From Sminthopsis crassicaudata (taxonomy: Eukaryota), in contig NC_133620.1 in the NCBI RefSeq assembly GCF_048593235.1, positions 28,987,772-29,051,771 of the forward strand: a DNA stretch of 64,000 nucleotides, read 5' to 3'. Made by a program: the position numbers and the translations under genes. The notes below the pieces were generated by a model. The model saw nothing but the letters and a program-made list of their open reading frames with translations, searched no databases and was not told where the DNA came from. This document shows positions 5,389 to 53,252 of this stretch, piece after piece; position 1 is the stretch's first letter, and each line of letters starts with the position of its first letter.

Positions 5389-8894
<3,506 letters not shown>

Positions 8895-8984
8895 TTGTAC
8901 TGACCCGACAATGGGGCAGCTGCCCCTTCCCCGGCCTCCCTCCTTAACCTGGCTGCAGGTCAGCAGTGAGCCTCCTTTTGTATA

Positions 8985-8990
8985 AATAAA
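8985..8990 (+). terminator. MUTYH polyadenylation signal
   Basis: AATAAA about 90 nt after the stop codon, followed by a T-rich tract. Confidence 0.75.
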
Positions 8991-9199
8991 GGATTTTTTT
9001 TTTACGTCTCTCCAGCCCCTTCTTGCCACTTTCTCTTTCCAAGAGGGCAAGCAGAAGGTGCCCGGGGACAGCTGTTGGGGACAGCAGCCTGGCTATGCAG
9101 CCTCCAGAGCTGTTCCCTTAGTTAATTCCTGATGAGCACCATTTTTAAGTAGCCAGCTTAATCTTCTCTGGTTGCTGAAACTGGTTCTTTTTCTTTCTT

Positions 9200-9660
9200 T
9201 ATTTTTTTTATTAAAGCTTATTATTTACAAAACACATGCGGGGGTAATTTTTCAACACTGACTTTTGCAAAGCCTTCTGTTCCAACTTTTCCCCTCCTTT
9301 TCCCCACCCCTTCCCTAGATGGCAGGTAGCCCCATGCATGTTAAATCTCTTAAAATATATGTTAAATCCCACATATTTTCACACATACTGGACTGCCTGC
9401 CATCTGGGGGAGGAGGTGGGGGAAGGAGCGGATAATTTAGAACAGAAAGCTTTGCAAGGATCACTGTTGAAAAAAGTGCCCATGTATGTTTTTGTAAACA
9501 AAAAGCTTTAATAAAAAAAATTAAGTTAATCACTAATTTCAAAAACTATCCATGTTAAATCCCATGTGTATATCCATATTTATACAGTTATCTCACGATA
9601 CAAGAAAAATCAGATCAAAAGGGAAAAAAATGAGAAAATAAAATGCAAACAGTAGACATG
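9200..9660. mobile_element. Two L1 3'-end fragments in opposite orientation
   Basis: 9204-9340 is the approximate reverse complement of about 9385-9520. Both resemble the L1 3'UTR/tail seen at 22100-22240 and 62050-62200. Confidence 0.65.
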
Positions 9661-10920
9661 CTGTGTGAAACCAGTTTGCAAAGGGCGGGGATAGGGCATG
9701 AATTCATGCCAAACACATCCCTCCTTTCAGTAAGAAAGAAGGCTTTTGCAATGGGCACAGGGTGAGTTTGCCACAGGGCACAGGGGTTTTGCAGTGCTAG
9801 CCGGGGCTCAGTGGCTCACCTCGCCTTTGCTTCAGGTGGAGGGAAGCCCGGCCTCCAACCTTGGTCCGGCCTCCCTCACCAGTGGGCAGCAGTGGGCACA
9901 GCTGGGAAGAATCTTGCCTTTCTCCCCATCTTGAACTCTGCCCCCATTCTCCCTAACCCAGTGCTGCCAGACCTCCTCCTGTTCTGGGCCTGAGGTTCTC
10001 GGGCTGCAAAGGCTTCTGGAAACCTCCAAGGAACTGCGTCCTCTTAGCCAGGGGGACAGCAGAAGCTCACTTAAGATCTGCAATGGTCCCGGCTAGCTCC
10101 TCTGAAGGGCTCAGAATAAGTCCTTAAATGCGAAGGTCTGGGCTAGCTCCTCTGAGTGATAATATCTCATTATCTCATTAGCACTTAGTAAGAACCTAAC
10201 AAAGATCCCCTGGGAAAACGATGTCATTGCTGCCTTCTGGCTTTGTAGCAGTTGTTCCCCAGCCCGCCATGGAGCTCTTCCTTATGGTAAAAGCCAAAAT
10301 AGCCGCCACAGAAAGTTCATCCAACAGTATGTGCAGGATTGCTCCCCGCTGGCCCCCCACCTCTGCAGTGAGAAAGGAAGGCTATCCCTAGCTCTCCTCT
10401 GGAACCTTCAACTACTACGCCCAGCTCCAGGCCCCAGTGACCTTTCCCAGAGGCCTCTGAGTGGTGCTATAGTGCACTCAAATGTGGCTCCAGACACTGA
10501 TTAGCAGTGGAAGGAGAAGGGCAGCCAGTGGGGAGGGCTTGGCAGGTTTTCCAGCCTGGATGAGCCTCCTCTGCTTTGTTCAGGTTCCTGCTACACGGTC
10601 CTAGCCAGCCCTTTCATTCCCGCAGGGAGCCTCCCAGCGGGACAAATCCCCCCAGCCCACCCCGGTGGAAACCTCTGCTGGGGCAGGGAGAGGGAAAGGT
10701 GCTGGCCCAGAGCCTCATTTGGGTTTTGAGCCCAGGACTTCCATGTTACTGCCTGCAGGCCGTGCACCCAAGTGCCGGAAAATAGGAGGTGTGTCCCAGC
10801 GGGCTGGACTCAATGGGATTTCCCGGGAGATTCTGAATTGGTCAGGAGCGCTTCTCTGTGGTCTTTACTAGTGGACAATTCTTATGAAATTGAAATTGGG
10901 GCAAGTCGGTGCCCGGGAAT

Positions 10921-28531: not shown

Positions 28532-31500
28532 ATGGGGGCCCGAGGCCTTGCCGTGGCCATCCTGCTGGGGCTGGCGGGGGCCACCCTGGCCTCCAAGAAT
28601 GGCTCGTGGATCTGCCAGCCGGCCCCAAAGTGGCAAGTGGACGGGGGCGTCTCCCCCATGGAGGAAGCCCTGGGCAATGTGACGGTGGTGGCCCTTCTGA
28701 AGGCCAGCTGACACTTCTGCCTCCTGCAGGCTGCCAGGTGACAGGCCTCAGAGGGAGGGTCTCGAGGAGGAGGGGCGAGGGTGTGCGAGGGCACAGCGCC
28801 AGTCCTGGACTGGGGGGGGGGGGGGGAGACAGAGGTCCCGGCTGGCTGACTCCGGGCAAGTCATTTTGCCCTATTTGCCTTGGTTTCCTTCTCTGTAAAA
28901 TGGGCCAGAGGAGGAAATGGCCAGGGATCTGCTGGCAGAAACAAGGGGTCCGGGAGGAAGAGGCGAAGGAGCCAAACTTCAGGCCCAACCGGGACTTCTC
29001 GCCGCGGGGTTACGTCCGGGCATTCTCAATTCTGAGACTCAGTTTCCCCGTGTCACAAAATCTCATCATCGGAAGGGAGCTCGGTGGGAGTAAGAGCAGC
29101 CTTCTCCATCCCAGAAACAGGTGGCTCTACTTGCATCCTCTGAGGACGGGGAGATCACCACCCCGGGGGCGGCCTGGTGGGAAACTTCCAGGCCTCCAGG
29201 CTCAGTCAGGCCGTAGCGGCCCCTCCATGACAGCCTCTCCAGCTCTTGGAGCGGGCAGCCCCTGCCTCCCCGTCCTAAATTGGTACTTGATGCCCGCAGG
29301 AGGCCCCTGGCAGCCACTGGGCACGGCGGGAATGGCGGACACGGGGTCTCCTGGCCCTTCCGAGCTGAGCTGCCCCCAGCACCCCCTTCCTAGGCCAGCC
29401 CCATGAATGCCCCTTTCTGCATGTGTCCCTTGCCTGTTCCCAGGCCCAAGCAACAGAGGCTTTATTCATTGAGGAAAGGGGGAGGGACAAGAAGGGGCAG
29501 AGACAACTGACCCAGAAATGGGATCTCACTGGAAAGTGAGTCCTCCCCTGACTGGGGGCCAGACTGACCTGGGGAGGTTCCACCCAGGGGCTCCTCTGCC
29601 TCCCTCCTCCTCAGCAGCCCCAAAGCCCCCAGGGGTTTATCTGCCCTGACACATCCGTGGGAGCAAGGTGCTGGTCCACTAGGACCACCAGAAATTCCTG
29701 TGGCACTCCTACTATTCAAGACCATTTTACAGAGGAGGAAACTGAGGCTGAAGGGAGGTGGCTTTTAGCTCAAGGTCTCAAAGTTAAAGGCAGGGCTGGG
29801 AACAGCCCCCTCTGACTGCCCTGCTCCATTATCTCAAGGTCAAGGCCCCTGGCAGCAGAGGCTCCGAGGGCCCGAGGGATGGAGGAAGAGCCACCAAGGC
29901 CCCACTAACGGTGCCCTTTCTCGTCCTCAGGATAGGCAACCTGCAGGGGCGCCTGGCGCGCGCGGGCGCTGCTGGGGTCCGCTTCATCATAGTCAATCAC
30001 AAGTCGGCCGCATCCCAGGTCCTGCACGGGGAGCTGGAGCTCCAGGCCCCCCGCGGTGTCCCCGTCTACAACCAGCGCGGGCCTGGCCCCGACATCTGGG
30101 GCCTCCTTGGAGGGGCCAAGGACGACTTTCTGGTTTATGACAGGTGGGCCCCGGGCCGGGCGTGCTGGGGAAGGGGGGTGGGCAGCACTGCTGACTGTTC
30201 TGGGCCACAGGCCGGGACCTTCCCAAACCTAGGGTAGCTGGGGATGCCCTTTGCCCCCAGGGCCGACTGCCACGCCAGCCCTCCCCCGCTTTTCTTGACT
30301 TGGTGGAGCAGCCCTGAACCCCTAGATACCTCATGAGTGTGAGTGGGCGGTGGGCACAGCCTCCTGACCTGCTGGGCGGGTGCCCTGCCCCCTCGACCCA
30401 ATTCCTGCATTCGTGGCCGGGGAAACTGAGGCCCGGAGAAGGCCGGGGACAGGCAGCAGACCTGGGGCCGCAAGCAGAATCTGCACCCAAGCCCCGAGAG
30501 TCGGGCCCCCTTCCCCCAACTGTCTGGCCCTGTCCCCCCAGGTGCGGCCGTCTGACCTTCCACATCCAGCTGCCCTTTAGCTCCCTGAGCTTCCCTTTTG
30601 TGGAGGCGGCCATTCGTTTCAGTCACCACAAGGATCACTGCGGGAACTGCTCTTTCTACCCCGCCCAGGTGAGATGAGGGCAGCCCGAGCTCAGGAGAGA
30701 GTTCAGAGCCCGTCCACGCGGCTTCCAGAGACATCAGGTCTCGCTCCAGTGGGACAGACTCGGGGGCCCCCCGCCCCTCGCCACCTCCCTCCGGGAGACC
30801 CCATGCAAGGCCAGGACTCCCACTGCGCCTCGGGGGGCTGTGAAGGGAGGTACATATTTACATACACGCTCAGTCTGGGGCAGGAAAAGGTGCCCAGTGC
30901 CAGTAACAAAGCCTCCGTGCCCGGGGCTGCTCAGAGCTGGTTTGGTCACTTTGCCCCGGTCCAAACTATCTACGCCAGCTGGAGCGTTCATTCCCAGGGC
31001 CGGGCCTGGTGCAGGGGAAGGGCTGAGTGGGTGACCCCCGATGGGGATCCCAGGCAGGACCGGGTGGGCCAAGGAGGCTCGTTCCTTGTCCTGGCAGAGG
31101 GGCAGAGGCCCCCGGCTCACCTAGGCCAGCCTCGCCTCAGACGCTGAGCAGCTTGCCTGAAAATTCTCTCTACAAAAAGCTGAATGGGGGTGAGTCTCCC
31201 CCCCCCAGCTGGACTGAAGCTTCTCCAGATGGGAGCTCTAGAGTGGCCCGGGAGGCTCACTCCCCCAGTTCTGGGGCTGCCTTTCTGGCCCCTCGGCCCA
31301 GCCCCACAGACCCCCCCAAGCTGGCGAGCGTGTGCCCAGTGGTCATGAGGGTGACGTGGCTCTCATTTCCTCTCCAGGTGAACGGCACGGACCAGGCTGA
31401 GTCAGCAGTCCCATCCCCTACCCCAGAAGGAGGGCAGAGGCCCCCACATGCAGGGCCCAGCACCCACTGGCCAACTCTGCCGTCTGGCTCCCCTCCCCCA

Positions 31501-31602
31501 GCTCAGGCCCCTGGGCCTGACCACAGCCCCAGCAAGCTGCCACCTCCCAGCCAACCTCCCTACAACCTGGAGCAGCTTCCCCATGAGCCAGCCATTCCTT
31601 AA
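28532..31602 (+). CDS. SELENOP2: Selenoprotein P paralog (SelPb), 256 aa, one selenocysteine encoded by in-frame TGA at 28709-28711
   Basis: Exons 28532-28737, 29931-30143, 30542-30668, 31378-31602 (771 nt, phases 2,2,0, all GT-AG; CACTAAC branch point at 29903). Protein: signal peptide MGARGLAVAILLGLAGATLA, CQPAPKWQV, VTVVALLKAS-U-HFCLLQAAR, FIIVNHK, VPVYNQ, DIWGLLGGAKDDFLVYDRCGRLTFHIQLPFSSLSFPFVEAAI, CGNCS. This matches the SELENOP N-terminal thioredoxin-like domain (human VTVVALLQASUYLC..KDDFLIYDRCGRL as I recall it). SECIS and polyA signal lie downstream. Confidence 0.93.
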
Positions 31603-31740
31603 CCTCACAGGGGGCACGGCCAGGCCCCCCGGCCCATTCCAGAGAGACAGACAAGTGAGGTGTCCCTGGTGTCGCGGTCACCACGGAGGTCTGCGTCCAT
31701 CAAGGCCGGGCCTTGCCTAGCCCCGGACCTCATCCAACCC

Positions 31741-31820
31741 CCTCCTTCCCTCAATTAATGATGCCCATGGTGCAACCCCGAGCAGCGGCCACAGTGGGCT
31801 GACTCCACGTAGGGAGGAGG
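31741..31820 (+). promoter_or_regulatory. SECIS element (selenocysteine insertion sequence) in the SELENOP2 3'UTR
   Basis: ATGA at 31758-31761, 12 nt, AA at 31774-31775, 25 nt, then GA of TGAC at 31800-31803. Helix II: GCCCA/TGGGC + TGGT/GCCA + GC/GC. Helix I: CCTCCTTCCCT/AGGGAGGAGG. Confidence 0.88.
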
Positions 31821-31901
31821 AACGAAGAAGAGTCCATCGTCCCCCCGGGGTGACCACAAGCCAGTGGGGCCCAACCAGTGCCAGGGGCTGGGGAAATGGC
31901 C

Positions 31902-31907
31902 AATAAA
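31902..31907 (+). terminator. SELENOP2 polyadenylation signal
   Basis: AATAAA about 80 nt 3' of the SECIS. Confidence 0.75.
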
Positions 31908-33452
31908 CTCGGCTGCCTACAGCTGCCTCACGGTCCGCTTGGGGGCTTTCAGGGGGCTGAGGGGGACCCCCACTGCAAGTGGGGCTGGGAGGGAGGCAGG
32001 TGTCCTGGGACGTGTGGGGGGGAATGTATGTGGGGCAGTGCGAGTGGGAGAACGGGAGGGGCCATACCCATAGGGGATCAGAGGGAGGCTGGGGGGGGGG
32101 CTTCCTGGAGGAGGCAGCCTGAGGGCCCCTGAGAGGGTTGGGAGGAGCCCAAGGTCATGGGTGACTGAGGACCCAGCCCTCTCCTCCCCCGACTTGCAGC
32201 AGTGGGGCTGTCCCCTAACCAGGGGCCCCTTTGGTGACTTTCTGGGGAGAAATAGGTCCTGCCCCTTAGGGAACCCCCCGCAGCCCCAGCCTGGCTCCCC
32301 CGCCCCAAGCCCTCCCGGGGTGGTCCCTCTGGGACAGAAGACTGGCCTAGAGCTCCGAGGGCCACGCTCGGGTCTCACCATGGGGCTCAGGCTCTCAGCC
32401 CTGATGTTTTAAGGCTTGCTCTGCCCTCAGCCACAGGTGGGAGATGGGGAGGACCAGTATGCCATGAGAAGACTGTGGGGGCTCTCGGCGGGAGCAGGAA
32501 TGCCACAGCAACATCCCTGACAAGCCTCCCCTTGAATACCTCTAGGGACAGGGAGCTCACTACCTCACCTCAAGGTAGCCCAATAGCTGGGGGTCAGCTC
32601 TCATTGCCAGGAAGCTGCCTGTGTACTCTTCCCCCCCCCCCCGGGGGGTTCCCTGGGGCCAAGTAGACGGGGCTAGACCGCCTCCTGGCGAGGACCCTTT
32701 GTGACCCTTGAAGGCGGATCTCAGGGTGTGAAAGAGACTGGTTTTGCACAGATGGCCAGGGTTCGAATCCTGCCTGACTCCTGGGTGCTCCTTCCCGGCC
32801 CAATTTCCTCTGCAGAATGAGCCGGGTTGGGTTCAGCGGGCTCCCGAGCTCTGAACCTCTCCAGGGGCAGCCCCTGCCCTTGAGCCCAGGCTTGGTCCCA
32901 GGCCCTAAAAACCCTCCATTCACTTCAACAAGCTTGTGCTCGCCGGCACCACCTTGTGGCCAAACATGCATCCTCAACAAAGGCAGGGGAATAGGCATTT
33001 ATTAAGCACCTACTGTGTACCAGACTCTGTCCCGAGCCCTCCTGGCCCAGGAAGCAGGTGCTCTGATTATCCCCATTCTACAGATGAGGAAACTGAGGTA
33101 GCAGAGGTGGAGGAGCTTGCCCAAGCAGGCCTCCCTGACTCCCAGGCCAGCTTAGGGGCTTTGGGGAGGGGCCTTTCCCACAACTTCCCTGAGAGAGACC
33201 TCTCAGACCCAACCTCGAGGCCCCACAAGGGGGCCCTCTCCCAGACATGCTCCCCCTCCCTTCTCTAATCTTCCTCCCCCAGACACCCACCACCCTGCCC
33301 CCACCCAGCCTCCTCCCTCTGTCTGCAGGGGACCCCCAGTGAGTCGGCTCTGGGTGGGGAGCCCCCCTGCTGAGCTCAGGCCTCTGGAGGTGGGGGGGAG
33401 GTGGGGTTGATGGGGCTTCCAAGTGAGGGGGGGCCGGGCCAGGCTTCTAGAC

Positions 33453-42079: not shown

Positions 42080-53252
<11,173 letters not shown>

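Follow-up and report, generated by a model that had tools for sequence, protein, structure and literature searches.

A probable single SECIS element of the marsupial SELENOP2 (selenoprotein Pb) mRNA

We consider the segment at 31741-31820 on the plus strand of the window, that is, of the whole stretch of DNA analysed here (64,000 nucleotides). With high confidence, this segment is the genuine and single SECIS of the marsupial SELENOP2 (selenoprotein Pb) mRNA, an element that folds with an AUGA/GA quartet and directs the decoding of UGA. It has the anatomy of a SECIS, is orthologous to elements in birds and fish, covaries in all of its helices, occurs once in the window, and belongs to a gene that is under purifying selection past its UGA.

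The three sequence motifs of the element follow the spacing ATGA-N12-AA-N25-GA exactly as an earlier note on this DNA had given it: the ATGA is at 31758-31761, the AA at 31774-31775 (12 nt past the ATGA) and the GA at 31801-31802 (25 nt past the AA). Folding either of 31725-31835 or of the 89-nt core gives two helices and, between them, an internal loop with about 11 nt on either strand, which bears the AUGA and the GA. Helix I, whose 5' strand (31741-31751) and 3' strand (31811-31820) are found by the minimum free energy (MFE) folds, by RNAalifold and by covariation, contains 10 pairs and one bulged U (31747) in the MFE fold, in agreement with the roughly 10 bp described before. The SECIS core is formed by AUGA and the following U on the 5' side (31758-31762) and by U-GA-C on the 3' side (31800-31803). 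This non-Watson-Crick quartet reads as U.C/G.A/A.G/U.U, also as proposed. In helix II (31763-31772 paired with 31790-31799; RNAalifold, covariation, folding), the structure departs from the earlier description of about 11 bp with a 3-nt bulge, and consists instead of 9 standard pairs and a single G.A mismatch. Above it lies an apical region of 17 nt. The folding z-score for the stretch as a whole is modest (-1.83). Structural features required of a SECIS are found here, namely an (A/G)UGA/GA quartet, an unpaired AA (AA or CC being required) some 9-13 nt past the core and two helices that have been kept in evolution.

We turn to the gene that precedes the element. As read from the sequence, SELENOP2 (also SelPb) is an intact four-exon gene on the plus strand with canonical AG/GT borders; it has kept its frame, with TGA and stop, and every splice site. 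The predicted product has about 256 residues, with Sec at position 60. Coding exon A (28532-28737) starts with the ATG at 28532 and is followed by a GT donor at 28738; exons B (29931-30143) and C (30542-30668) come next, and exon D (31378-31602) encodes a Pro-rich tail that ends in the TAA at 31600-31602. The Pfam search, done exon by exon, gives collinear SelP_N matches to exon A (profile positions 2-36, up to the TGA), exon B (48-116, E 4.3e-16) and exon C (118-155, E 1.1e-14). The in-frame TGA, the Sec codon (28709-28711, between ...VTVVALLKAS and HFCLLQAA), falls in the gap where the Sec of the family sits, and it is present in identical context at four other marsupial loci. Exon D can be aligned to the last exon of Antechinus and Sarcophilus; it has no Pfam match (SelP_C included) and contains no further TGA.

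Where exon A ends, a GTGA...GA stem-loop pattern (28680-28741) covers the Sec TGA, and all four of the other marsupial loci have it as well. Since this pattern is located within coding sequence, conservation is expected there. Structures adjacent to a UGA that act in its redefinition are described for SELENOP, and the pattern at 28680-28741 could be related to them.

According to the gene model, the element is in the 3'UTR, with the stop codon before it and a conserved AATAAA after it. Its first base is 138 nt past the TAA, close to the 140 nt given in the earlier note, and the AUGA starts 155 nt past the TAA. In the spliced mRNA, about 746 nt would separate the core from the UGA, so that the model places the element where a SECIS is required to be, in the 3'UTR and far enough past the in-frame UGA. 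The AATAAA (31902-31907), about 100 nt past the GA of the SECIS, does not vary among five marsupials and aligns at one place in all of them; it is a predicted poly(A) signal and would probably be used as such. Directly past it, 31911-31957 (CTGCC..., GGGCTTTC-GGG) is well conserved in the five marsupials, possibly as cleavage site and downstream element. Some 50 nt before the SECIS, a short block at about 31697-31708 (TCCATCAAGGC) has hardly changed among the same species, and its flanks are poorly conserved. Transcription, splicing and the 3' end of the mRNA are predictions from the sequence and its conservation. Among the public sequencing runs that share words with the stretch, several reach 0.2-0.31 in word share, which is near its exon share. 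In Antechinus, UROD follows SELENOP2 at a distance of about 2 kb and lies on the other strand (8771-10825, minus strand, of the locus L001).

The next question is whether the same element follows the same gene in other species. Queried with the frame of exon B under a length limit, a word search leads to one protein (P0001), and an exhaustive search with P0001 together with a word search with the koala protein P0152 brings up proteins named SELENOP2 in marsupials, birds, frogs and fish. Eight loci are compared: those of the marsupials Antechinus flavipes (L001), Trichosurus vulpecula (L002), Sarcophilus harrisii (L003) and Dromiciops gliroides (L004), of the birds Columba livia (L005) and Nothocercus nigrocapillus (L006), and of the fish Umbra pygmaea (L007) and Tachysurus vachellii (L008). 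In each of the eight there is one ATGA...AA...GA stem-loop shortly past SELENOP2. Identity over the last exon and the 3'UTR is about 80% to the two dasyurids (Antechinus and Sarcophilus) and 66-70% to Trichosurus and Dromiciops, so that the window belongs to a marsupial whose nearest relatives in this comparison are the dasyurids. The SECIS core is the best-conserved part of the 3'UTR, with 73% of positions invariant in the five marsupials vs 32% in the UTR upstream.

In the alignment of all nine species (92 columns), the ATGA, the AA and the GA are invariant. The RNAalifold consensus of this alignment takes the shape of a SECIS unaided, with helix I, the internal loop, a helix II that leaves one column unpaired, and the apical mini-stem, and each orthologue folds alone into the same shape. 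Paired cells amount to 86.9% over the nine species; shifting the partners by 1-3 columns lowers this to 46-57%. Cross-species covariation, which the earlier note had put forward as a check, comes out in favor of the structure: 13 of the 22 pairs show compensatory changes on both sides, and none of 500 shuffles reaches any of the five observed measures. Helix I has 84% of its cells paired and both-side changes in six of nine pairs, while in helix II 92.6% of cells are paired and five pairs carry a compensatory change. The seventh position of helix II (31769 with 31793, columns 34/61) is non-standard in the five marsupials (G.A, A.G, G.G, A.G, A.G) and in pigeon (U.U), while tinamou and the two fish have a standard pair there.

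How far can the element be told apart from chance? A loose SECIS-like pattern occurs at about 7 sites in the 64-kb window, so the pattern alone is little proof. The best look-alike elsewhere, at 50320-50365 on the plus strand, has an ATGA, an AA, a GA and a 9-bp lower helix; we reject it as a chance occurrence, as neither SECIS_1, scanned in the same way as for the element, nor the model described below matches it. In the 2 kb that follow the stop, no other [AG]TGA...GA stem-loop is found.

To score the window, we use a covariance model (R1) built from the SELENOP2 SECIS elements of two birds and two fish (teleosts), which contains no marsupial sequence. Run over the whole 64-kb window on both strands with filters off, R1 gives a single match at 31736-31824 on the plus strand (48.1 bits, E 2.8e-12), and the next-best match in these 128 kb of sequence stays at 10.9 bits (E 1.3). 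This unique match establishes the element as the orthologue of the SELENOP2 SECIS and speaks for its being the only one. Applied to the Antechinus, Sarcophilus, Trichosurus and Dromiciops loci, R1 finds exactly one significant site in each, with 39.4-51.9 bits. The claim of only one SECIS is thus borne out in the searches past the stop, in the R1 scan of the window and in the four marsupial loci.

The Rfam searches give a different outcome. No SECIS match is obtained in the whole window at the gathering threshold, nor in 701 nt at E up to 10. When a 121-nt stretch is scanned, the only setting in which the SECIS_1 match clears the filters, SECIS_1 (RF00031) is the top family. It is matched at full length to 31748-31814 (model positions 1-64), with the AUGA, helix II, the AA, the mini-stem and the GA correctly assigned, but it scores 17.2 bits, below the cut-off of 35. 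Controls scanned in the same way score alike, with 17.5 bits for the pigeon SELENOP2 element and 19.6 bits for that of the brushtail possum, and none of the eight orthologous SELENOP2 loci reaches the SECIS_1 cut-off. Because the orthologues score alike, the low score is a property of the SELENOP2 class of SECIS and not of the copy here; and because bona fide orthologues also stay below 35 bits, this cut-off does not discriminate for the class. A poor covariance-model score, which the earlier note had named as a refutation, is on its face what SECIS_1 gives, and the orthologue controls neutralise it.

These results bear directly on a reading in which 31741-31820 is only a GC-rich hairpin with ATGA, AA and GA suitably spaced by chance, or a hairpin that serves some other purpose, for instance as the precursor of a microRNA. 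The frequency of loose patterns in the window and the sub-threshold SECIS_1 score can be cited for the chance origin, and weak matches to miRNA families (e.g., mir-4477 at 12.5 bits) for the other role. The independent R1 model, however, gives its E of 2.8e-12 here and nothing else near it, the same element is located at the same place past the same gene in eight other vertebrates, and the covariation fits the helices of a SECIS. The miRNA reading is rejected, as 12.5 bits compares with a cut-off of 74 and only a CCUCC/GGAGG stem is matched. Taken together, we give a chance hairpin or another role almost no credence. A second reading accepts the SECIS as true by descent and considers it a relic, with SELENOP2 silent or decaying in this genome, as happened before the placental radiation. 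Such a decay could be read from the C-terminal exon, which is almost neutral (dN/dS 0.55-1.09), and from the mini-stem, which is weaker here than in other marsupials and birds. It does not agree with the frame, splice sites, TGA and stop, all of which are intact, nor with dN/dS of 0.11-0.36 in exons A-C. At the level of the RNA, all the core bases that are invariant in the nine species are kept here, and the changes in helix II relative to the dasyurids keep the pairing (e.g., A-U vs G-C at columns 32/63). We regard the relic reading as improbable, and a functional SECIS remains the preferred reading.

The selection on the coding exons supplies support of a separate kind. Computed exon by exon against the four marsupials, dN/dS is 0.21-0.36 for exon A, 0.14-0.26 for exon B, 0.11-0.20 for exon C and 0.55-1.09 for exon D. 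Purifying selection on exons B and C means that translation continues past the TGA, and this supports the decoding of the TGA as Sec separately from the SECIS itself. The interpretation in the earlier note, that the TGA is decoded as Sec, is supported on two grounds, one being orthology with covariation and the other the dN/dS of 0.11-0.26 over exons B and C. The exon D tail (31378-31599) is Pro-rich and is without the His-rich stretch of the bird and fish SELENOP2 proteins (P0005, P0014, P0162); among marsupials this exon evolves almost neutrally.

We now examine the apical region, where a 3-bp CCG/CGG mini-stem with a 5-nt loop is possible at 31778-31788 (Rfam alignment, folding). An extra mini-stem of this kind above the AA bulge is a type 2 feature, and it is clear in Trichosurus, Dromiciops, birds and fish. 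Here it is weak, with 3 bp and -2.0 kcal/mol, and has no counterpart in the centroid fold; it has 4 bp and -5.4 kcal/mol in Trichosurus and Dromiciops, and 5-6 bp and -5.8 to -10.9 kcal/mol in birds. Two substitutions, G to C in column 44 and C to G in column 53, turn the 4-bp mini-stem into one of at most 3 bp in a shifted register. The weakened form is common to the genome here and the two dasyurids and is the only local peculiarity of the element. This collapse by two substitutions raises the possibility that the SELENOP2 SECIS of the genome here and of the dasyurids is in drift, away from type 2 and closer to an open apical loop of the type 1 kind. A change from type 2 to type 1 has been reported for SECIS 2 of tetrapod SELENOP and would be a parallel. 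We nevertheless consider the drift doubtful, at perhaps one chance among several. If it is true, it might alter the efficiency of Sec insertion.

Among known systems, the closest is the SECIS of vertebrate SELENOP2/Sepp1b/SelPb, which shares with the element here the gene, the single copy, the 3'UTR location, the AUGA/AA/GA core and the two helices. The SELENOP2 elements of pigeon, tinamou, mudminnow and catfish align with it column for column. The last pair of the quartet is U.U in Trichosurus, Dromiciops and fish, while in the element here it is U.C. SELENOP (SELENOP1) is a paralogous gene with the same intron positions; unlike the gene here, which has one SECIS for one UGA and no Sec-rich C-terminal domain, it has two SECIS for many UGAs. 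That one SECIS suits a single-Sec protein, as proposed earlier, matches the description of Sepp1b mRNA as having one Sec UGA and one type 2 SECIS (PMC5133445, Open Biol 2016, section 4.4). The presumed source of all three groups of SECIS is the ancestral Sepp1b element (PMC5133445). SelPb has been retained by fish and birds as well as by platypus and opossum, and its loss in placentals predates their radiation (PMC2397514, PMC3316567; also bioRxiv 10.1101/2025.05.29.656587). Both the single type 2 SECIS of the single-Sec SELENOP2 and the retention of the gene in non-placental mammals are therefore already published, and the element here is one more marsupial case. The arrangement of the SECIS is conserved from fish through birds to marsupials, which is expected and ordinary.

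Insertion of Sec in eukaryotes proceeds by an established pathway of SECISBP2, eEFSec and Sec-tRNA[Ser]Sec. By analogy with it, the AUGA/GA quartet of the element would form a kink-turn and be bound by SECISBP2 (SBP2), which would recruit eEFSec with Sec-tRNA[Ser]Sec. The ribosome would then decode the single UGA, located in a thioredoxin-like UxxC redox motif, as selenocysteine and would not stop there. On the workings of Sec insertion the element teaches nothing new.

The main value of the finding is for annotation. Public "selenoprotein Pb-like" models exist for Antechinus (P0002), Sarcophilus (P0156), Trichosurus (P0154), koala (P0152) and Dromiciops (P0158), and all of them avoid the Sec codon. 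They do so by false first exons, made of sequence from intron 1 or from upstream, by an artificial splice right before the TGA (Sarcophilus) or by truncation (Dromiciops). Upstream in the Antechinus, Trichosurus, Sarcophilus and Dromiciops loci, the genuine exon that carries the Sec TGA is nonetheless present. ORF-based or standard pipelines miss or mis-model a selenoprotein gene of this kind, and it is the SECIS that marks the TGA at 28709-28711 as a Sec codon and the gene as a complete selenoprotein gene.
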